A DNA stretch of 64,000 bases. Source: Geosiphon pyriformis uo1 (lineage: Eukaryota; Fungi; Glomeromycota). Where the stretch lies: positions 350,541-414,540 of the forward strand of contig JAAOMT010000294.1 in the NCBI GenBank assembly GCA_016748015.1, in the 5' to 3' direction. The notes beneath the pieces are model-generated. The model was not told where the DNA came from. It saw only the letters and a list, made by a program, of their open reading frames with translations, and made no database searches. The position numbers and the translations under genes are program-made. This document shows, piece after piece, positions 3,401 through 50,173 of the stretch (positions within the stretch are counted from its first letter, which is position 1; every line of letters starts with the position of its first letter).

Positions 3401-4339
3401 CTGGACTCTGTTATTGAACAAAAACTTCAAAAAGCGCGAACGTCGCATGAAAAAAGTCACAGTTGTACGAAAAAATGCAAGCACAACAAGTTGCATGAAA
3501 AAAAGCAATAGTTATCATATATTTTTATTATATGTATTATTTGTCTTGTATTACAAATATGGTCGGAAGTCACATGATTTTCCAAGATAGTTCCTGGAAC
3601 AGAGTGTTCCATTTAGATTATAATTTTTAAAAAAAATTTCAATATTTTATTTATGATTACTACTTATTAATTTAATATTTAAAATTAATTTCTTTTTTTC
3701 AATAATAATATCAATTTTTTTTTTCAATAAAAATTTTGCTTATTTGTAAACAGAGAAATTTAAATTAAACATAAAATAAACTGAGAATTTATTTGAAAAA
3801 TATAAAAAAAAAGTTTCAAAGATTAAGAAATGTTTAAAGTGAATATTTTTATTTACATATGTTTTTTTTGTTTATAATTACTTGTTAGTAATAATAATTT
3901 TTTATATATGAATTATTTTCATTTGTTATTTTAGATTTCATGGATGATTTATTCTGAGGTTAAAGAATTTTTTTTTCAATGGATGATTGGGTAAAAATAA
4001 GCTGTTAGAGTTTGAATTTTCAGATGGTATGATATACTTTTTTAATGAGCTTGAAAAGGTAAATAAATATAGATTCGTTTTAAAAAATGTAAATATAGCA
4101 GTATATAAATTCTTATAATACTATTTTATATATCTTTAGATTGCCAAGACTCGAAAAAAAAATGATATTTATTATAGCAATTGAGTAAATAGTTCCATAG
4201 TCAATTGGATAAATTTTCATATTTCACAATTGGCAGACTTTTAGATATTTGAAATACCTACCAATTACTACGCCTACGCTGACGAAAGTTCAAAATAGAA
4301 ACTCTTGAATGTGGCAGATTTCACCTTAATAATAATAAT

Positions 4340-4600
4340 AATAATAGGAAAAAACCCTATTTTCTAAACGAAAAGGCATTTCAACTGTTCCCAGCATAAT
4401 TAAACATTGACACAAGGGAAAATGATCAGTTTGTCCAAGATCAAAAGATTGTAGAAATTTTTTTGCATGGGCTTTTTGTATGAAGAAAAGATTTGTGTTG
4501 AAATTTTGCAACAGCATGTTGGGGGAAGTTAATATAATAATTGGGAAGAAATGGTACTTTCAACAAGATTACAATCCCAAGAAATCTTTTGAAAATCTAT
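4340..4600 (+). mobile_element. Tc1/mariner transposase fragment
   Basis: Plus-strand, frameshifted VEILQQHV..EVNIIIGKKWYFQQDYNPK resembles the Tc1 second catalytic Asp motif FQQDNDPKH. Confidence 0.6.
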
Positions 4601-7207: not shown

Positions 7208-8430
7208 TACCGCGGTAGTAGTCCAACATTGTCAGAGACTTTCGTCTTAAATGCAGCGACACTGTAGGTCCTCAGATTCGGAAAAATATGTCTACTAGCG
7301 TTTGCTTCTGATAGAAAAATGTGATTGTCAAGATATTCATGCTTTTGGCATTTTTTATATCATCATCAATGATTTTTGTTGTTGAAACCCAGCCTCGCAA
7401 CCTCATAAAAAATAATGGTATAATTATGGGACATCATTTAGGAACCTGTTACTACTAGAGAACAATTCAACGTATACTTCATAAAGAAAACGTACATTCC
7501 AATGATTTCGGTAGAAAATAGAAGAAAACGATTTGCATGGACAATAGAAAAAAAGTATTGGACTATAAACGACTGGAAAAAGGTATTCTGGATAGATGAG
7601 TCTAATTTTTCTCAGTTTCAAAAGTCTGGGTAGGGAAGGGTATGACGTAAACCAGGGGAGGAATTGTATTGCATCTTCATCAAAACATCTCCTCAAAGAA
7701 TTTTTTGGGTAGGCTTTTGTTTTTTAAATTAGGTCCCATTATTCTACTTATAGGTTCAATTACTGGAAAAGTATATCAAGATATACTTGCCACCCATCCA
7801 ATTCTTACTCTTAAAGCATTTTCCCGCCATACTAAGCAAAAATTTATTTTCCAAGAGGGACAATGCACCTGGTCACAAAGCAATAATTGCAGAAAATTTC
7901 TTTGTCAAAATGGTGGTGTCTCGACAAAGTCCTGATCTCAATCCAATTGAGGTCATCTGGACTATTATTGAAATAGCAGTTCGAAAACGCCATACTCAAC
8001 ACTCAAGTATTCATGAACTTGAGAAGGTAATTAAAGAGGAATGGAATGTGATGTGATTCCACAAAAAGTATATCGCGATTTGGTACGATGGATGCCAATT
8101 CGAATTCAATCAGTAATTGCTGCTAAAAGGTGGGCATACTAAATATTAAATGCCTAATTTCAAATAAATAGCTTTCTTTTTGTGATGTAAAAAGGGGCTA
8201 TTTTGATGAATGGAGGTATTGTGGCGAAGTTAATAGTTGTAATAAGCATTTAAAAAATACCATATGTACAAGTGTTGAAAGATGGGATACGTCTTATTCT
8301 TGCACGCGAATTTATTTTGTTAACTTTTCCACAATACCTCCATTTACCAAAATATACCTTATATAAATAAATTTTTGTTGTACTAATTTAAGAAATTGAA
8401 GCGTGGAATATTTTTCTCACCCCTCGGTAG
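7208..8430 (+). mobile_element. Degenerate Tc1/mariner element
   Basis: DWKKVFWIDESNFSQFQKSG*GRV*RKPGEE (~7570-7665), DNAPGH and SPDLNPIEVIW (ORF 7787-8056), C-terminal GHTKY* at ~8131-8148; frameshifts and stops; ends approximate. Confidence 0.85.
8199..8354. repeat. ~37 bp imperfect inverted repeat with ~80 bp loop (MITE-like or subterminal hairpin)
   Basis: tattttgatgaatggaggtattgtggcgaagttaa (from 8199) versus reverse complement of 8318-8354, tattttggtaaatggaggtattgtggaaaagttaa. Confidence 0.8.
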
Positions 8431-35346: not shown

Positions 35347-36657
35347 ATGAGTCAATTATTATTATCAGAAACCGAACAAAACTTTACCCATTTTCCATTG
35401 AAAGGTCAAACTCTTGACCCTGAGAAGAGTTGCAATATGAATAAGAAACCCCTGTCTTCTCCCGAATCAGATTTCTCTTACTTCACAATTAGCACACCAC
35501 CACCTTCACCACCTTCACCAAACAAACAAGTAATCGTTTTACCTGCAAAGATTCAGACAAAGTGTGGTCCAGACACGACATTGAGGCCATCCATGCAATT
35601 TCGCAATGACGTTGAATCCTTAACAAATAAACCTGATCCTCAAGAGCCTTTACCCATTTCAATGAAAATTGAGTCGCCTGAAAAATCAAAACGTCGGCTA
35701 AAATATCGATTCATACTGGCCGAGGCTCCTCCAGATATACAGAAACAATTGGGTGTAGAAGCAACACCAGAAACTTCAGCTCTTCTTACCAATTCTTTAC
35801 CTTTAAACTTTTCCCATTCAAAATCTATGAAAAAAGAAAGCTTACCACTTCAAGTTGAAAAATTAAATAAAGGCAAGATAACTATGAGCCATCGTTCCCG
35901 AAAAAGTCCATATCCCACAAAATCTCCAAGTAAATCATCCCAAGGGTTCACTTTTAAGCTTCAATTCCCTTCCACATTTTCCGATGACAGAATTCAAAAT
36001 ATACCCCTCCCTATAAACAATTATAAAGAAAAAAACGAATCAGAGGATGAAAACATTTCAATTTTTTCCGAGGATTCATCAGTTGAATCTTCCGAATCCA
36101 AACGTTCATTCCTGGCTATAAATAAAAAGAAGACTCGTGACGCATCAGAATTTGAAGGAATCCAAAATTCTCATCCAAGACAACGGAGAAGAAAGGGAAA
36201 TTCTTTCGCAAGGGTCATGGCAGATCGTGGTTTGATAGAACCGTCATTAACGACTATGCCAATGACAAATCTACCAACAGGTGACCTAAAATCTGGAAGA
36301 ATCCCTTTACCACCTCCAGTTGAATTCTCTGAATTAATTAAAGAACTTAGGCAATTAAAATTGGAAACAACTGGTTTAAATTCGAGACCAAATGTTTCTT
36401 GGAAAAGTGGTCCTTTATCAATAGAGCATCTACCTCACTATGAAGAATTACATCCGAACGAAGCTTATGTTGCCTCAGTTTTACGTTTAACTCCAGTTCA
36501 ATATATTAATGCAAAACATTCATTAATCACCGCCAAAGTTCGATATGACACAAGATTTTTACCATTTCGTAAAAGTGATGCACAGAAACTTCTCCGAATT
36601 GATGTTAACAAAGCCAGTAAGCTTTGGGAATATTTTAATGAGCTTAAATGGATATAA
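35347..36657 (+). CDS. SWIRM-domain protein (Fun19/YOR338W-like); single exon
   Basis: 436 aa ORF with a disordered S/P-rich N-terminus and C-terminal LHPNEAYVASVLRLTPVQY...FRKSDAQKLLRIDVNKASKLWEYF. Confidence 0.9.
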   Translation: MSQLLLSETEQNFTHFPLKGQTLDPEKSCNMNKKPLSSPESDFSYFTISTPPPSPPSPNKQVIVLPAKIQTKCGPDTTLRPSMQFRNDVESLTNKPDPQEPLPISMKIESPEKSKRRLKYRFILAEAPPDIQKQLGVEATPETSALLTNSLPLNFSHSKSMKKESLPLQVEKLNKGKITMSHRSRKSPYPTKSPSKSSQGFTFKLQFPSTFSDDRIQNIPLPINNYKEKNESEDENISIFSEDSSVESSESKRSFLAINKKKTRDASEFEGIQNSHPRQRRRKGNSFARVMADRGLIEPSLTTMPMTNLPTGDLKSGRIPLPPPVEFSELIKELRQLKLETTGLNSRPNVSWKSGPLSIEHLPHYEELHPNEAYVASVLRLTPVQYINAKHSLITAKVRYDTRFLPFRKSDAQKLLRIDVNKASKLWEYFNELKWI

Positions 36658-37243: not shown

Positions 37244-39249
37244 GACCTTTACTGTATACTTGTAAATGTTAAAACGGGTAAAAATAATTGTCTAGTCATA
37301 TTACACGAACTTTCATAAACAAAATGTACCAAGTGGATCTTATCTTCTAATTGAAAGAGCAAAAAGTTATTTTGGCCCGATCTCAGTGATACCTTAAATC
37401 TCGCGAATGCATTTCATTGTCTTTGATTCCACTAAAGCTCTTTACTTGGAAACACACATGATGATCTTTAATCTTGGTTGTACCTAAATAAGTTTGGTTA
37501 AAATGATAGCAAATCGAAACAGGATACATTCAAGGATTGAAAATCGGGAAAAGTTTTTTAAAAGTTTCGAGAAATTCGGAAAATATTATTTATTTCACTC
37601 ATATGATATTTTTTTACTGACAATCTTGGTTCAGTTAAAATTTTGTTCCATCATCATCAAATGTTCTTTATGTTGTTGAAGCACAAATTCCCCCCTGCAA
37701 GTTAAAGCCATCTTCCCTCTTTTGGTGAGATCGAAAAAGATAATCATTGAACAACAAATAATAAATTCCTTATTATGTCTGAGATGCCTAATGAAGAAAG
37801 AAAATTCTATAAATAAAATATTTGATCATGAGGGATAGGGGATGACCAATTTTGTTTTGTGCCCTATTTTTGATTCAACTTTTTTTTAAAGTTTTACTCA
37901 ATGACTGATATTAAATTATTCATGAAAACAATTCATTTTTTTTTTTTAATTTAGGAATTTTGTTTTTCCACCGCCAAGGATTTTTCTACAATGAGTTACA
38001 CACAGCCCAAAAATTCCATAAATGATGAATTGACAAAAAAAATTCTTAATGTGAATGGTAATTGAGATTTTTTTTGGACGGTATTCTAAAATTTAGCCAT
38101 TTAAATTTTTTAAGTAACACGAGGTAGCTTTTTCAATAATTTTCTTCTAAAAGAAACTTCTACTTGAAAATTCGTTCAACTTGAGTTTACCAATAAATAA
38201 TTAAAAAAATAATCAAAAATATGATGAAGTTTCTCAAAGATAAAAATATATAGATTATTTCTAATAATGAATTAAAAATCGAAAATTTTATTTTGATATT
38301 CGAGCTTTAAAACTTCGTAACAATCTTTTGTAGAATCTAGAAAAAAATTGATCAAAGAAACCCTTGTGAATTCCTAATTTTCATTATAATTTATAATTTT
38401 TTAAAATTCAAAATTTTCCTCAAGCTACAGTATATATTTCAATAAGGAACTTTTTTTAATCCGCATTTTCCCTTAATTATATTAGCCGTTTTCAATTTCT
38501 ATAATCCACAGATAGACTAGGAGCTTATCTTAATCTTTTTTACAAAGAAAATTTAATCAATATGTTATTAATAAAAATTGATTATAATAAGATTTTTAGT
38601 ATTTTATTTTTAAAAAAAACTTGAATAGTTTAGAAAAAACCTTTTCTTCATTTGTCTCCATCTAATCTACACGAACTCCTCGGTTTAAAATTTTAAATCT
38701 CATCGCCTTATTTTTACTCGAAAATTCAAGCTAGATTTTGACGACCAGTCTTGACCAAATTTGATGTAGTTCATGATGAGATCAGTTATGAAGCACAACA
38801 TTTATTCACAGATCTTCCCAAAAAGTGAAGGTTCATAGAGAATCATTCAACATTAAAACTTTCTTTACTTTTTGAAGTAAGTCCAAGTTCCTGGGCTCAA
38901 CTTCAAAATCCTTTTAGCGTAATCTTTACAAGAAATTGGTCACACCAAATCGAAACAGAGTTTGGGGTCAGAAATCTCTGTTTGTTCTTCGAATTCGTTG
39001 AAAGTTATTATTAAACCCTTCACGGTCCCTCTATTGTGCCATTAGAGATCATGAAAGATCTTTAACTATTTTCATTCCTCAAGCACTATGAGGTAATCTT
39101 GTTTTTACTTCTATGAATCAAGTCTTTTGGTATTCTTTTCTAAGATCGGCTGAATGAAAAGACAAGAAAGATAAGTCATCTTTCAATTAAATTTTTAATT
39201 GGCTAGCGAATCTTTTCTTGATGATAATCGTGATTGTTGATATCTATCT

Positions 39250-39790
39250 CGGATGAATTATAACACATTAATAGTAGTATCCGTTGCCAAGTAAGACTAC
39301 TATTTCCTACATAACCCTCAGGATATGATTAAGGCAATGTCAACCAATGCCCAGAGGAGAATTTCCCCGAGTACTATTTTCATCTCTGTTCATCACAGCT
39401 TGGAATTCCCGGTAGTTGTACACTTCGAAACCCCTCAAATGCTTTTTATGTCACCATATCAGCTACAAGTCTTGAATGTATAAGTCTCATTTTGAATACA
39501 ACGCAGATTCCTAACTCTTAGACCTTGATAATTAGACGTTGAAAGAAATGGTAATGTTATCAGAGTATTTTTTGGACGGTCTTTCACGTAATTTTTCTCA
39601 TCTTATGGTTCGTTATGTCTGACACCTCAAACGACAGGATGATGATTACGTCAAACTCACGAATGAAGCAAACAATTACCTTTCTCTCTAAATCCTTCGT
39701 TGTATGTGCGAGACTGCTTTGCTGAGTTGTCGGGCCCTACGTTTCTTACGCTTTGAAGCAGAGACAGTCTGTTTGACTTTTTTCGAAATG
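39250..39790 (-). mobile_element. Fanzor (TnpB-like) relic, copy 2: C-terminal RuvC-II, zinc finger, RuvC-III and putative omegaRNA/right end
   Basis: Manual translation with frameshifts: ISKKVKQTVSASKRKKRRARQLSKAVSHIQRRI / FIREFDVIIILSFEVSDITNHKMRKIT*KTVQKIL**HYHFFQRLIIKV*ELGI / IQNETYTFKTCS*YGDIKSI / EVYNYREFQAVMNRDENSTRG / ILLWALVDIALIIS* (stop 39318-39320). Confidence 0.85.
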
Positions 39791-40515
39791 GGCGTAGGTA
39801 GAATTTTATTCTCACGACTTTATTGATTAGTAAAAATTTTCAGCGGTAACACATATGGCCTCATTTGCGTTCCAAAACCTTTAAATTGAGATCATTTTAA
39901 TTTGGTCTGGAAAAAATCTTTTCTAGCATCGAGAAAAATCAATTATTCAATTACAATCATTGGTTTTTTGATACTACGATACATGTTTGATACTCAACAA
40001 AAAGTTTTTGCACCTGGCAGGAAATAATATTGATAATTTTTTTTATTTTTAATGGCAATTCTTGCATTACTATGGAAAAAATTATCAATTTAAATCAACA
40101 GCTGAAATTACTTTTCAAATTTACAATCTACTCTACTTTTACATATAATGATGATACTAAATTTGTGAGTGTCAAAGTGTTTACAGTCTAAAATATCGTA
40201 ACCAGTATGAGGCGGCCAGCCACCAAAAATATGATTAAGTATAAAGGTTTTTTGTGATTGACTTCATAAATTCTGCGCCCAAATTATCCTTTTCACAATA
40301 CAATAATATGATGATTTCTTATGTTAATTTGTAACTTTAATAGTAGGTGTCAAGGATTAGCCTTCATTTGTGCCAACCAAAAGTTTACATAAAGAATGCG
40401 AGCTTTTTATCTTGGATAATTATGAAATAATACTAGATAGGAAAAAGCGAATAGTAGAGAGTTAGTATCTGATGAATGTCGTCGATATATCTCCTATAAA
40501 AATTATCTATTGAAC

Positions 40516-42485
40516 TCACCAATTCTTTTTTTTCTTCTTCCGTGCGGCTAAAGTCTCAATTGCAGCTGTACTACCATTGTTGGCTGCTGTCGTCAACCAT
40601 TTTGCTGCTTTGCGTTTATCTTTAGTAGTGCCATAACCGCCATCGTAACATAAAGCAAGACTATATTGAGCGGACACGTTGCCACCTTCAGCCGCTTTCT
40701 TATATGTTAAGAAGGCTTTCAATCGATTCGGTCCAGTTCCTTTTCCGTAGTCATAACACTGTGCAAGATTATTTAGAGCAGCAGCATTTCCAGCTGATGC
40801 CGCTTCCTTGAACCAATCAAATGCTTTTAAACTATCCCTTTCGACGCCAATGCCATCTTGATAGCATAAACCGAGATGATTTTGTGCCGCGGCTTCCCCA
40901 TTATCTGCCGCCTTTCGATAAAAGTTGTAAGCTTGTTGTGTGTCTCGATGCGTTCCAAAACCTTCCTCAAAGAAATAACCTAGCACGCAATCACGATGTC
41001 TTCGTTCACCACCGTTGTACAATAACTCAAATATTTTTTTCGGATCATTATCTTCTACATCTGTCCATTGCTTGAGATTTTTGGCTAGCCAATCAAACCC
41101 GTACTTTTCAGCTTCTACATACATTTGTATCACTTCATCTAACATTTCAGCATCTGATTGCGGATTATCATTAATTGGGCTGAGTGGTCTTTGAGAAAGA
41201 GTCGTCCCAAAGCCAGCATGCATATTATTTATGCTAGGCGTTGCACTAGTTAATAAATTGTTATGATTGATGAGAGCATGTTGGCTATTGGTATCCGATT
41301 CTGGCCCACGATCTCCGGCAAGATCATCTTGACTAGCATAACGCATAAGCGTATTGGTATGTGTCGACGATGATGATTTACTAAAACTCATCGTATGATC
41401 CGGTAATTCTGGGCGCACATTGAACAATCCTTCCAGTACTACTAAAACATACAACAACTGTGCTCTTTGCCGTGGATTATGTCGTGTGATTTTCAAAAAT
41501 ATTTGAGAAAATTCAAAAGGACAATCAGCAGGAAGTTGTGTTCTTAGCACTTCTGTAGTGTTGAATTGTTTTTTCTCTGACAAAATATTGTCTCTTAGCA
41601 TGCCATCATAAGGGATTGCACCATTGCATCCAACTAAAAATGAGGCAGTAAAAGTTTTTGTTCAGAACATGTTTACAATGAGAATTTCTTAAAGTTTGTT
41701 GCTTACCCGACCACAATATTAACCCAAAAGTGTAAATATCAGCAAACTTGGGATTCCTGTGATATATTAGAAGAAAAGAATTTTGTTATTTTGGAAATTT
41801 TCAAAAGTATAGCTTCGATTTAAATAAGGCATAACTTACTCTTCAAAATATTTCTTCATGCTAAGATCGACAGCGACCACCTCTGGAGCCACCCAATGAA
41901 TGGTACCAGTTGGCTGAAATAGAGTAACATCTTCCTCGCTACGACGTTTATCGCTGATGAAGCCAGTAAGTTTAGGCGTTAAGTCTGTCGTCAAATATAT
42001 ATTTTCTGGTTTTAAATTATAATTTACAATATTTTCTTCGTGACAATGGAATAATCCAAGTGCTATATCGTGACAAAGTTTAGCCCTTAATTCCCAGCCA
42101 ATGGTCTGGTTTCTTTTTAAAAAGGTATTCAAGGTTCCGTTTGCCGCATATTCAATTATCAGAGCAATTTTGTCACCACGCAACATAAATCCCAGGAACT
42201 TTAGTACAAATTCACATCGACGAAGTTTATTGTAAATTTGAAAATCTTCCAAGATTGCAGTCATATCATTCTATAAGGAAGATTTTAAAACGTGTGAGAA
42301 ATGCAACTTTTACATTTTTGGGATTCTCCAATTCCGCCAGAACTTACATTGCTCGATTTGATTGCCACATCTCGTCCTTGATATTGAACCTTGTATACTT
42401 TTCCTAGCCGGCCTGTGCCGAGGATAATCGGTGGTCTTGGCCACGATATTTCATGACTCTTTATGGTGATGTTTTTTAATGACAT
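40516..42485 (-). CDS. TKL-type (pseudo)kinase domain fused to C-terminal Sel1-like repeats; 4 exons
   Basis: LGTGRLGKVYK, VAIK, IEYAANGTL, NYNLKPEN, WVAPE, spliced ADIYTFGLILW; four Sel1 repeats (AQNHLGLCYQDGIGV, ALNNLAQCYDYGKGT, AQYSLALCYDGGYGT); basic tail RKKKKKNW. Confidence 0.92.
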
Positions 42486-45314
42486 TTATTGAAGTACCAA
42501 GTTGTTTCTTTGACGGTTTTGGAAGTATGGTGGTGGAAGTATGATGTTGGTTTATATTATTTATCGATGATATTCCTTAGGATGTTTAGCCTCAAACCTT
42601 AAACCTTACTTAAAGGAATTGTGGATTCTCTTTTTGCAAAAAAAAGAAGCGAAAAAGAATTAAGACGGATAAATGAACCGTATAGAAAGTTAAGTGATTG
42701 AAAACAATCAAAATGGTCGAGCAAGTTGGGAATGAGTGAATCAGTTTTTAATTTTATTTTAATTTTTGGCTTGATTGACGGTTGATGATGGCGGGTTAGC
42801 TGTTAGTAGTTGCCATTAAGTACACAAGTTGAGATGCATATTGTCATTCCGGGCACACACGTACCAAACACACTTCCACACGCGTAATTTCCCCCTTAAA
42901 CAAGCAATTATAGCGTCGCGCAGCTTTACAACTAACACTTTTACAGGAATTGAGAGACAAAAAGCTCAACAAAAAAAAATGCATCAAAAACCTTGCATAC
43001 AACGTGCAGTGTTGTTCTATCAAGAATTCAAAGAGAAAAGGACTATCCTTAAAAAAGACATGCAGCTAGAATTTTCTGCTTAAAAAGTTTTCGATCAAAT
43101 TAATAAAAATATCATATATTAACACACATGTAATTAGCACATAATTTCTCTGGATTTACACGAAAATGGATTGCTGAGGCATTCTTGAACAGAAACGCTA
43201 AACCTGGCACAAAAAATCAGTCCTATCATTAATTATGTTTTCATAAAATCAAGCCGAAAGAATTATTTGAAATGAGATCGTGCACAATTTAATTTAATTC
43301 CAACAACCAACTTTTTTCCGACTTTTTACCTATCCTTTTCCCGTCTCTTTCGCGCTCTATCATTGTGCGAAAATTTGGTCGCGGAATTCTTTTCCGAAGC
43401 AATAGGACCAAATCATGAGATAAAGGATATTTTTTGATTGATTCTGTCTAAAATTTTCATTCCTTCTTGATTAGATTTTTTTTATGTAGCCTTTTTCCTG
43501 TTAATGCTTTTTCATTGATTCTTTTCGTATGAGCTTTCTATTGAATTTTCTTTCACTTCAATGAAATCATCTCGATTATTATTTTTCTTTGTTTTGATTC
43601 GTGTTCATGAATGAAGTCAAATAAAGAATAAAAATCTATTTCATTCCTTGAATCGAAAAATAATGAATATATTTTTATTATGTATCTTTACTATTTTTAT
43701 CATTTTCTTGGTTATTAATAAATTGGATCATTCATTTACATTTATTAATTATTAAATTTACTTTGTTTGGAAGAAACAATTTTTTTGTTTCAAAATTAAG
43801 ACTCATTTTTGAATGCAAAAACCTTGAACGCGTTAAGATTTTGTATCTCAATTTGTTTTTATGTATATGGGTAATTTTTATATCTCTAATTGTTAATCTT
43901 GAATTACCGTTTTTGAAATTTTATTGGCCAAAAACAAACCATATTAATTATTGTACGCAATGCGCCTTGAATTTTAGGAAACAATAGATGCAGAACTTGT
44001 AAATATTTAGGTTTTGCTTATTTTGATATATATATGTGTATTTAAATGTATATAGTTTTTTCTTTTTTGAAACTCCTTATAAATCATTAAATGTTTTAGA
44101 TCTCTTTGAGCATTATTTGTTGTTATTTTCTTTTTCGATTGCTTACCAAACAATGAATCATTTTGTGAGGTATCTTTATCCCAATCCTTATTTATAAATC
44201 AAAACTATTTTTTTATTATACTAAAGAGTGCAAGATTAATTATTCTTGTGCAAATTGATCTGCAAACTTTTTTGCAATTGGACCAACGAACAATATTATT
44301 ACTTTGTTCTCTGAAGGTGATATTCAACGGCCTAGATTTGACGCATTTATATTGAAGAAAGATGTAAATTATATATTTTCAACATTTAAAGCTTTTCCTC
44401 AAATTTTTAAATATATGTGTGTAATAATAAAAGTTAAAATATAAAGTTTATAAACTGGAATTTACAATATACCTGTTTTTAATATAAAATTCTTTGTTTC
44501 TTCAATTCATATTTCTATCTCGATGAATTACCGAATCGCTGGCTCACAATAATGAAATCACGTTAACTGAAAAGTTTCAAGTTGATCGACTGTAAACGTA
44601 ATAAAAACTATGGTACAATAAGAGAATGATGTTTTTTTTTTTTTGAACAAATTCATTTTTGTTTACAAAGGCATAACATAAATGACTTTTCTCTATTGGA
44701 ACTAACTTGACCTTTAAATTTTACTTGAATATTTATTCATCATTTTTTTTCCAAATCATCTATTTTTGATAAAAATGGATTCATATTAATTGGAAATTGA
44801 AAGTTTTGATCTATAAAGCCTAAAATACAAAAATCAAAAATAATTAAAAGTTAAATTCTAATTCTAATTTTTAAAATTTTTTAGATTTATTTGCAATCAA
44901 AAGAATTTATTTAATTAAAAAACAAAATGCCAAGTTGAAAATTTCTTGGTTTTATTATACAATAAAAAAATTGAATTCTCGTTCCGAGTACATTATGAGA
45001 AGCTAATTCAATAAAATAAAAGAATTTCAAGCTATTATAGGAAATAAAAACAAGTTTTTTAAAGAATTTCCAGATGTTTTATTGAATGTATTTGAAATTT
45101 AATTAATAAAAATGTCCAAACTTGTTTGAATAAGGCTAGGAAATAACTTTAATTAGAAATTCTGGATGATAAATAATTTTGGTAAGATTAGTGTAAATAA
45201 ATAAGAATTAGCTTTGATTGATTGTATCTTTTATAAATTTTAAGGAATTTTGTCGGTTTATCACACATTAAAACATGTTTTAAATTTTGGTAAACAGAGA
45301 AGTTATATGGAAAA

Positions 45315-47930
45315 CAGCTTCGCAATTCCGGTAGTTGTACACTTCGGACCCTGCGATCCTTTTTATGTCACCACAGGACCAGCCAATCTTGGATATAAAA
45401 GCTTCATTTTGAATGGCAAACACAGACTTTGGTAATCAGATGTTAACGGAAATGGTAATGTACCTAGCAGAGCATTTTTCGGACAGTCTTTCACGTAATT
45501 TTTTTCACCGTACGATTAGTCATGTCTAACACCTCAAATGGCGGGGTCAAACTCATGAGTGAAGAAAACGATCGCCTTTCAGTGGGTTTCACTCGGCAAT
45601 CCTTGTTTTGGATGTGTGAGACTTCTTTGTAGAATCGCCGGGCCCTGTATTTCTTATTTTTGAAGTAGAGACAGCCAATTTGACTTTTTTCGAAATAAGG
45701 ATATCCATATATTTGCGCAGGCGAACAATGTCATCGGAGCCTATTACAACCACGCCTTTAGAAAAAAAATGTATAAGGCTTTTTATCATTTAGTTTTAAA
45801 GAGAAATAGGCCAAATTTAAAAAAAATTCAGGAAAGTGAACGAAACTAAACTTATATCATTTTATGCCACTGAATTTTCAATTTCAATATTCAATTATTA
45901 AAAACAACGAAAGGCAAGATGTTGTTTTAAAAATTTATTGGTGGATTTTAGTTAACTAAATAAGGCAAACATTTGTATTTAAAGAAATGTTTAATTAAAT
46001 TGATTCACTGTATTTCAGAAGACGACCGTAATTTATCATGCGATGGAAATTATTACAACGTATCTATTGAACTTTTTATTTTCCGTGAAAATATCCTTGA
46101 TGCTATTGATGCAAAAGCTATATAAAAATTTTGCAGAAACTCTGTGAGATTTTGATCCCCTTTTTAAAATAATTCAAGACGAGGAAGTTTAATATGAAAA
46201 AAATTTGATCATTCTATTGTAGATTCCGTCTTGTATACTACTAGCAAATGAGGAGTATTTAATTTACAAATTTCTTCGAGGTGATACAACATATTAATTC
46301 AGGCTTTGCTGATCTTCTTAAATGAAAGAAATTTGCTGAATTAGAATCACATTGGAAACTATGAGACTAATCTATCCCAAACATTGATTTTTCCTAAAAA
46401 AGCAGATTTTGGTCATTGACAAAAAAAATTACAGCCAACAAATTCTAATTAAACGTTTGGCTATGAAGAAGATTAAAACTTGAGCCAAAAATAAAAATAT
46501 GTATAATATAATATTGAAGGCGGCGTCTAAAAACCGAGTTTCTTCAATGTGGAAATTTTCAATGATCATAAATAAATTTTATTTATATATTTTCAATATA
46601 ATTTTTTGTGAGTTGCTAATAATAGTTTTTAAATTTCTTTGAAATCAAAGTATTACTTGTCATTAATAACCAATCTTAAATTTTGCAATTATTCAAGTTC
46701 ATTTCATATTAAATTGTTTTTTAATTTTATATATAAAATAATTTAATATTTTTTAAACAATGAATCAAGTTATTGTTATTAATTTAAATTTAAATTTATC
46801 AAAAAAGTTTTTTAATATCTATTAATTTAAAATTTTGTGCAATGTATTTAGTTTATATAATGTTTTATCAAGGTCTTTTGACTCAAAAATATTATAACTA
46901 ATTGTAACTTTGATGAAAAATTGATTGTAAATAAATCCAATGTTATTTAATTACATTATATAAAAAATAAATCTCTTATGAATTCTAATTAAGTGTATTT
47001 ACATAGTTTGAAATTATAATTGTGTAATATTGTTTTTTATTAACATTTTTTTAAATTTTTTATCTTTATTATTTTGCATTAACTAAAAATAATGGGTAGA
47101 TACTAAATGAACACCAGGATCAATAAAGACTGCATTTCATAGACACATTTATTCTTATTATAAAAATCTTGGCCTTGTTGAGATACGAGACGTAATATTG
47201 TCATCCAATGGCTTATGCGACTAAAAAGTAAGATAATGCGCTGAAACACCTTGTTATCCTTGCGTATTATATCTAATAATTTCGTCTAGTATTAGCAGGA
47301 GCCGAACTTGAGCAACCTCCTAAGAGCATGCCGGCTCTATAAAACCCTTGTTCGTCCCAGATAGCGGAAGCGTCATCAAAAATAAGACGTTTTTGTTGAA
47401 AAATCATAGGCTCAGCCATTTCTTTCTGTAATGCCGTTTTGTTTCTTTAAAACAACACAAGGCCTTTTGTTTCACCCATTATGTTATTAAAGGCAAACCT
47501 CACCAAACCCATGCCTCGCTTCAATAATTGCTTCTGAGGGTGGTTGGGATGCATCTTCACCAATGTGTGCTTTAGAGTTTCTCCCGAGCGTCGTCGGTTG
47601 CACATTTTGCTTTTTGTAGCGCTCTCTTCTCTATTTAGCTATTCCCCATCCTTGCGTTCTGCCGATGAAGATAGTGTTGATGGCGACATTGAATGCAAAG
47701 CGGCAGATGGGTAATCACCACTCCGCTACATGCCATTCCAATATGGTCTTAATCCCAGTTGTTTGAAGCTACCACCTGAACCGATTTCTCTGATAAATTT
47801 TTAGGCTGGAAATTGAAAGAGGAACTTCTTTTGTCGACCGAGATCTTTTTTTTGCTTGACGCTAGACATAGGTGTTGAGGTGACCTTTCTTAGTAGCGGA
47901 GGTGCTGATAATTGCTTCATTTTAGGAAGT
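45315..47930 (-). mobile_element. Fanzor (TnpB-like) relic, copy 1, interrupted by a ~1.3 kb AT-rich insertion (~45765-47105)
   Basis: 5' part: RPYWN..[W]LP (~47709-47750), TLKHTLVKMHPNHPQKQLLKRGMGLVRFAFN (47487-47580; HTH_OrfB_IS605-like), NAVFIDPGVH (47107-47136; RuvC-I). 3' part: KGVVVIGSDDIVRLRKYMDILISKK, SETH*KAIVFFTHEFD/PPFEVLDMTNRTVKKIT*KTVRKMLC*VHYHFR*HLITK, IQNEAFISKIGWSCGDIKRIAGSEVYNYRNCEAV, truncated at ~45315. Confidence 0.85.
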
Positions 47931-48122
47931 TAGTTCGAGAAGAATACACGCGAAGAAAAAAAGGTGAGGTAGCAAAAAAGATGGGGGCATTTATTGTCAC
48001 CAAATAGTTTGATTACTAAGCAGTCAAATGGGCTATCGTTTTTATAGTATTATTTAATAAAGATCTGATACCACACATTTTTATATCAAGTTAAATGAAA
48101 TATGAACTTGATTAAAGAGAAT

Positions 48123-50173
48123 TTATAACTCCTCATGGGGTTTTCTATCTCCAGAAGTTTTGCTCGCATTTTCCTCTTTTTCAGTTTCTGTCCCATCGAC
48201 AATAGGATTTTCCTTTTTCTCAGCCTTGGTATCGTCTTTATCCTCAGACTCAGTGGTCTCCTTCTCTTTTGTCTTTTCTGGTTCTTTATCTGTTGTGATA
48301 TTTTCCTGAGTTTTAGTTTCAGAATCCTTCCCTTTCAGACTGAGCGGAAAGTCATACGAAAAACTTTTGACCCTCCCGTTAATAGCATCTTTGATAAACC
48401 TTTCGATTGATTCTTCATCAAATGGTCCCAGTAAAGCCCTATAGGCTTGTTTCTTCGGATTCAAAATCACTAGATTAGGGAACAAATCTGCTATTTTGAA
48501 GTCCTTTATCATTTTCTTGGCGTCGTCATACAAAGAATTGAACCAAACGAATCCAAGTTTAATTTTCCCTGCAAACGATTTATGAAGTTTCTCTTTGACT
48601 CGTCGAACGATTGCCAAGTTGGCTTCGTGTTCAGAAACTGATTCAGGAAATTCAAGTTCTAATGTGCTGAAGGTAAATATACAAAAGTTTGATGTTGATA
48701 GGCAGTTTTTCTCCAAGTCTGTTTGAGTTCGAGCTTCCAGAATTTCCGGATCAACTTTTTTCAAATTTCAAAATATCAGCAAATCTACTATCATGTTTAA
48801 ACATTTTTCGAAGTCATTTCGAGAAAGACTTACACGTTTCGGGTATCTCTTCTGAATCTTTTTTTGGTGTTTCATTTGGTTTTTCGGTTTTCTTTATTTT
48901 TGGCTTGAATGGGAGAGCATGACCATTCAGAAATTCAAATAAGGTCTCATGTTTCAGCTTACCTGAAAAGTTAAATTGAAGCGGGTTGAATTACAATTAA
49001 CCATAATTCGAATTTTTAACTAGCTTCACATACCGTCGAATGTGATCACATCGCTTTTTCCTTTTGGAATAACGATCAATTTTGGGAAAGAATCAACCCC
49101 AAATCTTTTCAAAACCAAAGAGTCTGTGTGTCGTACCTCACCGAAAAGCAAGCGATCGTGAAAATCAACAGAAAGGGCTTTGTAAAGCGTAGTCGTTCTT
49201 TGCTTATTGGTAAATAATATTACTTTGGAAAGGGTTTCATTCTAGGGTCAAAATGAAAAACATTAGTCACGTCCAAAATTTCAAAAAGTGATCGATGAAT
49301 TTAAAAATATTTGTACATCTTTCTCCAAAAATTCGTCAATTGTCATCGATTTTTTGGTAGGGTTCTTGTTTGTAATGGGCTGCACAAATGAAGGAATCTC
49401 GGGAAGCACAAAATCGACTATGGCTTTAGCAGTTCTAGGCCCTTGGTAATCTATAAATTGTGGTTTTAATTTATTTTACATAAAATTTAAATCTATGAAA
49501 TGATTTTAAATATTTGGAAGGAAATAATGGTAATAACCTTTTGGCTTTTTGGTATATGCGCCTGGGTTCTTTTTATCAGGAACTGATTGACTTGGGAAAA
49601 GCTTAATCGTCGGGTATCCTGCAAAAGGAAATCGAAGAAGGAAATTATGTAAAACTTCAAAAACTCTCAAAGCATGATGAAAACTGCATCATATTATACC
49701 TTTAACATTGTAGGCAGCGCAGAGAGCTCCATTAGAGTCATCATCACAATCAATGGCGACAACTTTAGCAAGACCTTTAAGATTTTCTGCTACCTTTTTG
49801 TACTCCGGGACTAACCTATTTTTAAAAATTTTAGAGCAGAAAAGAGGATGTTGTTATTGGGCAAATAGTTTTGAAAAAAAATTTGAGAACTTACTTTTGG
49901 CAGTGACCACACCATGGAGCAAAAAATTCTACTAAAACTACTCGCTATAGATAAAAAAAAGAGTAACATACAAATTTAAATGAGATGTGAGGTAAAATGT
50001 GGTGAATCGACATCGAAATCTTGGAAGAGACTAACCTCGGTTAATAACACTTCTTTCTTAAAATTTTTTTCAGTGAGTAGCATCACAGAATCATTCTCAT
50101 CATATAAAGCAGTGGTGTAGGAGGCAAAGAATCCGAAGATCAATAAAAGGAAACGAATACCCGATGATTGCAT
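48123..50173 (-). CDS. ER protein disulfide isomerase family member (Mpd1/PrpA/PDIA6-like, one CGHC domain)
   Basis: Signal peptide; spliced exon RVVLVEFFAPWCGHCQ (49895-49944); GYPTIKLF; b-type thioredoxin domains; acidic tail ending in the HEEL ER-retention signal. Confidence 0.92.

Follow-up and report, generated by a model that had tools for sequence, protein, structure and literature searches.

The window, by which we mean the whole stretch of 64,000 nucleotides of Geosiphon pyriformis DNA that was analysed, is AT-rich (GC about 30%) and carries two decayed fragments of a Fanzor2-like gene, here called copy 1 and copy 2. Both lie on the minus strand, about 5.5-6 kb apart, on either side of an expressed gene encoding a kinase domain and Sel1 repeats. 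A PDIA6-like thioredoxin-domain gene (PF24541, 2.5e-17) was seen at 48123-48764 (-) and a SWIRM-domain gene (PF04433, 5.6e-9) at 35347-36657 (+). The features on which the argument draws are given below in coordinates of the window, those of copy 2 and its surroundings coming before those of copy 1.

39250..39790 (-): copy 2, whole relic; 5′-truncated Fanzor2-like fragment that reaches from the helical linker following RuvC-I to the element's 3′ end
39691..39789 (-): copy 2, codons of a basic helical linker (ISKKVKQ...RRI), the first preserved part; family HMM positions 30-59, E 0.011
39611..39655 (-): copy 2, RuvC-II strand FDVIIILSFEVSDIT; family HMM 56-100, E 1.8e-8
39462..39497 (-): copy 2, IQNETYTFKTCS, with the rearranged Glu and the first zinc cysteine; family HMM 131-143, E 0.0017
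39364..39429 (-): copy 2, FEVYNYREFQAVMNRDENSTRG, with a ruined second zinc knuckle and the RuvC-III motif; family HMM 152-175, E 6e-4
39287..39362 (-): copy 2, decayed C-terminal codons (ILLWALVD...), placed by alignment to intact relatives and by DNA alignment of the tails
39245..39286 (-): short conserved non-coding tail, right end of the element, kept in copies L030, L035, L044, L007 and L032
39342..39550 (+): exon of an apparent antisense transcript (X1 contig record 2, 0 mismatches)
39551-39637 (+): its 87-nt GT..AG intron, placed by splice-site context
39638..39993 (+): its second exon (X1 contig record 2, 592 nt), which leaves the relic into unique DNA toward the 3′ end of the kinase-Sel1 gene
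40516..42532 (-): kinase-Sel1 repeat gene (Pfam Pkinase 1e-19, Sel1 8e-34), expressed and spliced
45314..45762 (-): copy 1, 3′ block; RuvC-II to the fourth zinc cysteine, ending before RuvC-III, with an 11-bp deletion
47086..48000 (-): copy 1, 5′ block; N-terminal HTH-like segment and RuvC-I (AVFIDPGVHLV, 47101-47133)

A reading of the letters alone (hereafter the sequence-only reading) had described 39400-39790 as a diverged direct repeat of 45322-45700. BLASTN inside the window confirmed this, aligning 39395-39789 with 45314-45696, both on the minus strand, at 72% identity over 410 columns (E 1.2e-56); MAFFT agreed, and the same pair was recovered in a genome-wide search with E 2.4e-54. The arrangement that it described, two relics in the same orientation flanking the Sel1-kinase gene about 5.5 kb apart, was likewise found, with both relics on the minus strand and the gene at 40516..42532 between them. 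Its placement of the end of the feature at 39318, however, did not hold, as family homology continues in the 3′ direction to 39245-39257. At the other end, DNA homology to the family begins at 39788-39790 in every comparison. The DNA outside copy 2 is single-copy in the genome, and this includes the 725 bases beyond the 5′ break (39791-40515). Because homology always starts at the same three positions and the next 725 bases are single-copy, copy 2 is broken off at its 5′ side inside the linker that follows RuvC-I. The relic showed no internal repeats.

Copy 2 belongs to a family that is widely dispersed in the genome. With the 483-bp stretch as query, we found at least 43 places in the 128-Mb, 792-contig Geosiphon pyriformis assembly, at 65-83% identity, and a six-frame scan of the assembly for PF07282 (Cas12f1-like TNB, the TnpB zinc-ribbon domain) returned at least 68 places, 10 of which coincide with the DNA matches. 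When the two sets were merged, at least 98 distinct loci were present on 67 contigs. The longest open frame was 183 aa at any PF07282 match and 201 aa with the NCBIfam model guided_TnpB, and no genomic match, full-length or otherwise, reached the guided_TnpB cut-off of 100 bits. We therefore saw no intact gene among the copies scored; both this search and the tree described below took in 44 loci, those of the about 98 that were examined in sequence, and an intact copy may lie elsewhere or be split by introns. Two further loci, L013:1462-2587 (-) and L015:1189-1737 (+), represent a second, more divergent Fanzor-like subfamily with the motifs 'IIIPPFNASQ' and 'TVSEAYTSKTC'. This subfamily is the best preserved in the genome (PF07282 2.5e-20, with a single in-frame stop in L013) and resembles the Gigaspora margarita protein CAG8578432.1, listed in the table of Saito et al. 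An association of the relics with kinase or Sel1 genes was considered and rejected, such a gene being present at 1 of about 40 other loci.

The nature of the family was read from its better-preserved members. Open frames of copies L013, L014, L018 and L024 match PF07282 with E values from 9.4e-14 to 2.5e-20, and matches of the better copies to guided_TnpB reach E 2.8e-17. Against the PDB, the L018 frame matches 9B0L ('TnpB-like protein L79' of mimivirus, ApmFz2) with E 3.9e-11. A profile of 16 sequences of the family (A3; Geosiphon frames and relatives) matches the same structure with E 3.2e-25 over chain residues 360-509, followed by Cas12f structures at 6e-15. SpuFz1, a Fanzor1 (PDB 8GKH), was matched neither by the family profile at E <= 0.01 nor by the single sequence at E <= 1. 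Judged on these profile scores, 3.2e-25 for 9B0L with 8GKH unmatched, the family appears nearer to Fz2 and TnpB than to Fz1 in sequence. The catalytic triad of ApmFz2 is D324, E467 and D501, E467 being shifted by about 50 residues relative to the canonical site in RuvC-II (PMC11832414), and Jiang et al. described how Fanzors swap the canonical Glu for Pro or Gly and use an alternative Glu (PMC10530073). The sequence-only reading had proposed aligning its motifs to Fanzor columns, and in the profile alignment to 9B0L the 'QNE' of 'IIQNEAYTSKTC' falls on E467 and the second D of 'DRDEN' on D501. In the same alignment the family's 'IPPFEV' lies on ApmFz2 'IGKLNV' and the canonical column holds Pro. 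The rearranged active site is thus present in the family, its alternative Glu lying about 45-50 residues downstream of the canonical RuvC-II column. The E of 'SFE' is not the catalytic RuvC-II glutamate, which is the rearranged one in QNE (E467 column). These scores and motif columns make the family a TnpB homologue of the Fanzor2-like, rearranged-site type. When the PDB was searched with the L014 frame that carries RuvC-I, nothing relevant was returned, and the family's counterpart of D324 in the RuvC-I column is therefore putative.

Relatives were sought by word search with the L018 frame. This frame is 100% identical to the hypothetical protein G9A89_017284 of Geosiphon pyriformis (P0001 in our set), and the search also returned better-preserved relatives from soil-type metagenomes and a fragment from Funneliformis geosporum, all of them PF07282-positive. 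A relative from Gigaspora margarita stands in Supplementary Table 1 of Saito et al. 2023, so that Fanzor-type genes in Glomeromycotina are already on record. Our literature search found no paper that mentions Fanzor together with Glomeromycota.

Placing copy 2 itself within the family called for more than a Pfam search. When the stop-free pieces of the window were run against Pfam, copy 2 went unmatched, and tblastn of family ORFs with genome-size statistics found copy 1 alone. Since the pieces are too short for Pfam, we used a family HMM, built exclusively from sequences outside the window, and ran it on the complete six-frame set of 3,475 stop-free pieces from the window. The seven top matches of this HMM all fall within the two relics, and copy 2 is represented by five colinear pieces (HMM positions 30-59, 56-100, 112-123, 131-143 and 152-175; E 1.8e-8 to 0.12). 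At the DNA level copy 2 is homologous to the ORF-bearing copies L014 (3e-15), L024 (4e-13) and L018 (2e-11) and to copy L003 (E 2e-55), and in a codon-by-codon projection 46 of 102 residues are identical to the L018 frame. The assignment of copy 2 thus rests on DNA homology together with the family-specific HMM, no piece of the window being significant in Pfam. The identification of copy 2 as a second Fanzor/TnpB relic in the sequence-only reading is borne out by its DNA homology to PF07282-positive copies and by the match of their profile to 9B0L, and the strings that it quoted were recovered from the minus-strand translation of 39200-39900 and 45150-45900, spread over three frames.

Read from its 5′ break, copy 2 opens with the linker, which aligns to 'LISKK..STSKRKKKKA' of L014 and of the relative P0003. 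The RuvC-II strand FDVIIILSFEVSDIT follows; at the canonical Glu column, where the family has Pro, copy 2 has Leu. This segment includes the 11 bases, corresponding to the 'VIII' codons, that are missing from copy 1 and present in copy 2 and all other aligned copies, just as had been claimed for these residues. Between the RuvC-II strand and IQNETYTFKTCS lies the helix '..HYHFFQRLIIKV.ELG'. Within IQNETYTFKTCS, the rearranged catalytic Glu codon occupies 39486-39488 and the first zinc cysteine 39465-39467. This is the KTC cysteine that had been reported as kept, and it is indeed intact, as the sole surviving zinc ligand of copy 2. The zinc finger is otherwise lost: the four ligand columns read C, Y, Y, F. 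Immediately after IQNETYTFKTCS, copy 2 has TGA and Tyr where relatives read W-C, ruining the first knuckle, and the second knuckle has gone from C to Y and from NC to EF, giving YNYREF against the relatives' Y-x-C-R-N-C.

The C-terminal part of copy 2 bears on two further claims. That the relic continues into a RuvC-III motif was supported, with FEVYNYREFQAVMNRDENSTRG at 39364-39429 and the second Asp of DRD on the D501 column. In the RuvC-III motif AVMNRDENSTRG the catalytic Asp codon is GAT at 39382-39384; the first, non-catalytic D of DRD has become Asn (39388-39390) and the catalytic second D is retained. Glu and Asp codons are therefore both kept at their catalytic positions in copy 2. 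Beyond the motif, ILLWALVD lies at 39339-39362 in a frame that differs from that of FEVYNYREFQAVMNRDENSTRG. The stop at 39318 had been taken to end the gene, and here the alignments led to a different result. Intact relatives run on with '...ALILSGDHAGNNSNT' before their stop (ending '...SGDHAGNNSNT' in the protein alignment), and the TGA at 39318-39320 of copy 2 occupies the Gly codon of 'SGDH' in '...LSGDHAGN'. The ancestral stop position is 39287-39289, which is TGG in copy 2 and TAG in L007, L032 and L035. What had been read as a stop at 39318 thus arose when a Gly codon mutated to nonsense.

Copy 2 has decayed throughout. RuvC-I is absent owing to the truncation at 39790, and the remainder carries at least seven in-frame stops and at least four frameshifts, so that no single open frame holds a complete catalytic triad and four zinc ligands. 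With its upstream part gone, these stops and frameshifts, and three of four zinc ligands lost, copy 2 is a pseudogene fragment that is unable to make a nuclease.

Copy 1 is complementary in what it keeps. Its 3′ block gave a family HMM match with E 5.3e-12 for 45283-45435, and in its 5′ block the N-terminal segment 47450-47638 matches PF12323 (HTH_OrfB_IS605) with E 2.4e-4, at the gathering score. The string 'AVFIDPGVHLV' is RuvC-I-like, its correspondence to D324 being putative. The two blocks are split by an unrelated, mostly unique insert of 1.3 kb (45763-47085). A segment of 120-170 bp in this insert, at about 46700-46870, recurs at least 17 times elsewhere in the genome with 69-80% identity and is possibly a small MITE-like repeat. 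Family homology in copy 1 ends at about 45314, directly after '...RNCEAV', and copy 1 accordingly lacks RuvC-III. In the MAFFT alignment copy 1 and L022 seemed to share a 24-bp deletion; this proved to be an artefact of gap placement, since in BLAST the homology of copy 1 simply ends at 45314. Between them, the two relics retain RuvC-I, RuvC-III and, from RuvC-II, both the strand and the rearranged Glu, together with all of the four zinc cysteines but the third, which is Tyr in both. The proposal that they jointly cover all three RuvC segments and the zinc finger is thus right, as a description, for the RuvC segments and falls one cysteine short for the zinc finger. Similarly, copy 2 does hold the RuvC-III that copy 1 lacks, but it 'supplies' this C-terminus in a descriptive sense, both copies being dead.

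We consider it very likely, with a probability of about 0.92, that 39250-39790 (-) is the dead, 5′-truncated remnant of one insertion of a small Fanzor2-like element, of about 1.5 kb, in the Geosiphon pyriformis nuclear genome. In its ancestral form the gene would have encoded an RNA-guided nuclease of the TnpB superfamily, with a split RuvC domain and, separating RuvC-II from RuvC-III, a CxxC...CxxC zinc ribbon. Its active site would have been of the 'rearranged' Fanzor/TnpB2 type, with Pro at the canonical RuvC-II Glu and the catalytic Glu about 45-50 residues on, in 'QNE-YTSKTC'. Copies may have spread in a burst of transposition to roughly a hundred sites and then decayed neutrally. Copy 2 has lost everything upstream of the post-RuvC-I linker and retains the family's 3′ end. 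Copy 1 (45314-48000), which has lost its 3′ end and gained the 1.3-kb insert, would be another member of this sub-lineage that inserted and decayed separately.

Among known systems, the best solved relative of the family profile is Fanzor2 (ApmFz2, mimivirus L79, 9B0L; Fz2 proteins of fungi and Naegleria are given in Saito et al. 2023). ApmFz2 and the family share, in the same order, a linker helix, a non-acidic RuvC-II column, the rearranged Glu, CxxC, a second CxxC and DRDEN with the catalytic Asp. The inferred size of the family protein (about 450-520 aa) is likewise similar, and a TnpB-like HTH is present at the N-terminus of copy 1. Unlike Fanzor2, copy 2 is a fragment, missing RuvC-I and three zinc ligands and broken by stops and frameshifts; and whereas 9B0L comes from a virus, the family resides in a Glomeromycotina fungus and is known here from its sequence, any omega-RNA, TAM, IS607-type partner or activity being hypothetical. 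Fanzor1 (SpuFz1, 8GKH) is alike in being a transposon-carried eukaryotic TnpB homologue, in sharing the superfamily fold and in having a rearranged site (PMC10530073), but the Geosiphon family is shorter and closer in architecture to TnpB and Fz2. Prokaryotic TnpB2 ('pro-Fanzor') and Cas12f resemble the family through the PF07282 and guided_TnpB matches and the second place of Cas12f in the PDB search (6e-15); in contrast to them the family is eukaryotic and nuclear, and their scores are well below that of ApmFz2. The 'ghost' Fanzor loci of Saito et al. 2023 (Supplementary Data 2) are, like copy 2, non-coding Fanzor leftovers that keep the 3′ end region. Ghost elements, however, keep both ends and may still supply omega-RNA, whereas copy 2 has the 3′ end only, borders on unique DNA where its 5′ part is broken off, and gave no terminal inverted repeat when compared with a family 5′ end.

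The 3′ tail of copy 2 (39245..39286) is a candidate remnant of an omega-RNA or right-end region, with structure unsupported. In the approximately 40 bases past the ancestral stop a 9-bp hairpin is possible in copy 2. Consensus folding with RNAalifold found no covariation in the tail, the single-sequence fold has a z-score of -0.22, which gives no support for structure, and no Rfam family matched. The comparison of the copy 1 5′ end with the copy 2 3′ tail gave no terminal inverted repeat, the score being below the shuffle mean. The only RNA seen at copy 2 is on the strand opposite to any omega-RNA.

The pair of relics could also have a single origin, copies 1 and 2 deriving locally from one insertion, either because a 5.5-kb gene-bearing segment entered the element with duplication of about 390 bp or through local partial duplication followed by trimming. 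The geometry would suit such a history: the relics have the same orientation, lie about 6 kb apart and overlap by 390 bp, with copy 1 missing the 3′ end and copy 2 the 5′ part. They are also sisters in both trees (FastTree, SH 0.91; IQ-TREE with GTR+G, UFBoot 90). Their shared branch, however, is short, at 0.025 versus 0.144 for the terminal branches, and in the IQ-TREE analysis clade A has the shape of a star, its terminal branches measuring about 0.13-0.15. Copy 2 is equally similar to L003, on another contig (73%), and to copy 1 (72%), and the rare variants common to the two relics number 5 in 306 sites, which ranks them 10 of 161 pairs, with unlinked pairs scoring alike. Nor does the surrounding DNA favour a local event: BLASTN detected no homology between the flanks of the two copies beyond the repeat, and the 5.5-kb interval between them is single-copy and has no bounding repeats, giving chance AT-rich matches only.

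The genome-wide distribution of copies, which the sequence-only reading had suggested mapping for local clustering, bears on the same alternative. Two pairs lie within 7 kb versus about 0.5 expected (P about 0.1), which is a point in its favour, and five within 25 kb versus 1.8 expected (P about 0.04), these counts being lower bounds. The other tight pair is at locus L025 (G000:C773:419500-429400), where same-strand relics at 4026-4361 and 7282-7629 are 3.3 kb apart. That pair joins two different clades and thus reflects independent insertions in one repeat-rich spot. Clustering is accordingly mild, of a kind typical of repeat-rich regions, and with a significance of only P about 0.03-0.1 it is weak evidence for local duplication. 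We consider a shared local origin unlikely, and independent insertions from one sub-lineage would be the simplest account of copies 1 and 2.

A different alternative concerns what the relic does now. Public run X1 contains half the sampled words of 38800-42700. Its contig 4 has both introns of the kinase-Sel1 gene removed (41634-41706 and 41756-41838, CT..AC), which is the behaviour of RNA, though no library type is recorded for the run. One C-to-T difference from the kinase-Sel1 gene was seen in X1, at 40746. Over the relic, a 592-nt contig matches 39342-39549 and 39637-39993 with 0 mismatches, skipping 87 bases that can be read as GT..AG on the plus strand alone, and the joined exons have no stop-free stretch of more than 60 aa on either strand. 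Given the GT..AG intron and the lack of a long ORF, the relic is crossed in antisense by a plus-strand RNA that is spliced and apparently non-coding, as seen in one contig of one run, which speaks to presence and not to function. Contigs of paralogous copies (X1 records 1 and 3) overlap the relic in part. One paralogous contig, at a depth of about 50, joins the equivalents of 39389 and 39691, the shorter side being only 26 nt; it hints that 'ghost'-like members of the family with internal deletions are transcribed elsewhere.

From this transcript it could be argued that the relic has been co-opted, providing exons of a spliced plus-strand non-coding RNA that is convergent with the kinase-Sel1 gene and has a regulatory role. 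The perfect match of the contig, its plus-strand intron, the short ORFs and the RNA-like behaviour of the run at the minus-strand introns of the neighbour gene are consistent with this idea. Against it, the evidence is one contig from one run described as 'RNA? probably DNA', contigs give neither strand nor level, and the initial 27 nt of this contig map elsewhere, away from the relic. The donor site, moreover, is formed by codons kept in several copies and so may be incidental, no Rfam family matches, and decayed repeats are often transcribed, so that transcription does not show function. We regard co-option as improbable. Slightly less probable still is the more specific proposal that the Fanzor fragment was recruited as exons of a spliced antisense lncRNA modulating kinase-Sel1, with relics seeding new transcription units in Glomeromycotina.

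Geosiphon hosts TnpB-rich cyanobacteria. That the relic might represent a TnpB of bacterial origin, brought in by the Nostoc symbiont or by contamination, instead of a eukaryotic Fanzor, or a chance resemblance, can nevertheless be dismissed as effectively refuted at this locus: the Gigaspora relative does stand beside cyanobacterial TnpB and outside the annotated Fz1 and Fz2 branches in the table of Saito et al., but the GC content of the window is that given above, the relic lies between spliced eukaryotic genes (kinase-Sel1 among them), one ORF of the family is identical to a Geosiphon pyriformis protein, the family comprises about 98 decayed copies on 67 contigs with relatives in Funneliformis and Gigaspora, near-identical cyanobacterial TnpB genes such as recent transfer would predict were not seen, and chance is excluded by the statistics of the repeat (E 1.2e-56) and of the family HMM.

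As a pseudogene fragment, copy 2 alone matters little. As one member of a family, it shows that Geosiphon pyriformis, an early-diverging member of the Glomeromycotina, carries about 100 decayed Fanzor2-like copies, none of them intact among those examined, and this bears on how often RNA-guided nucleases have invaded fungal genomes and gone extinct there. Repeat annotation of such genomes should take in this Fanzor2-like family. Relatives in JGI and ENA data appear better preserved than the Geosiphon copies, and the map of motifs to residues of a solved Fanzor2 may aid the mining of related fungi or soil metagenomes for active relatives.
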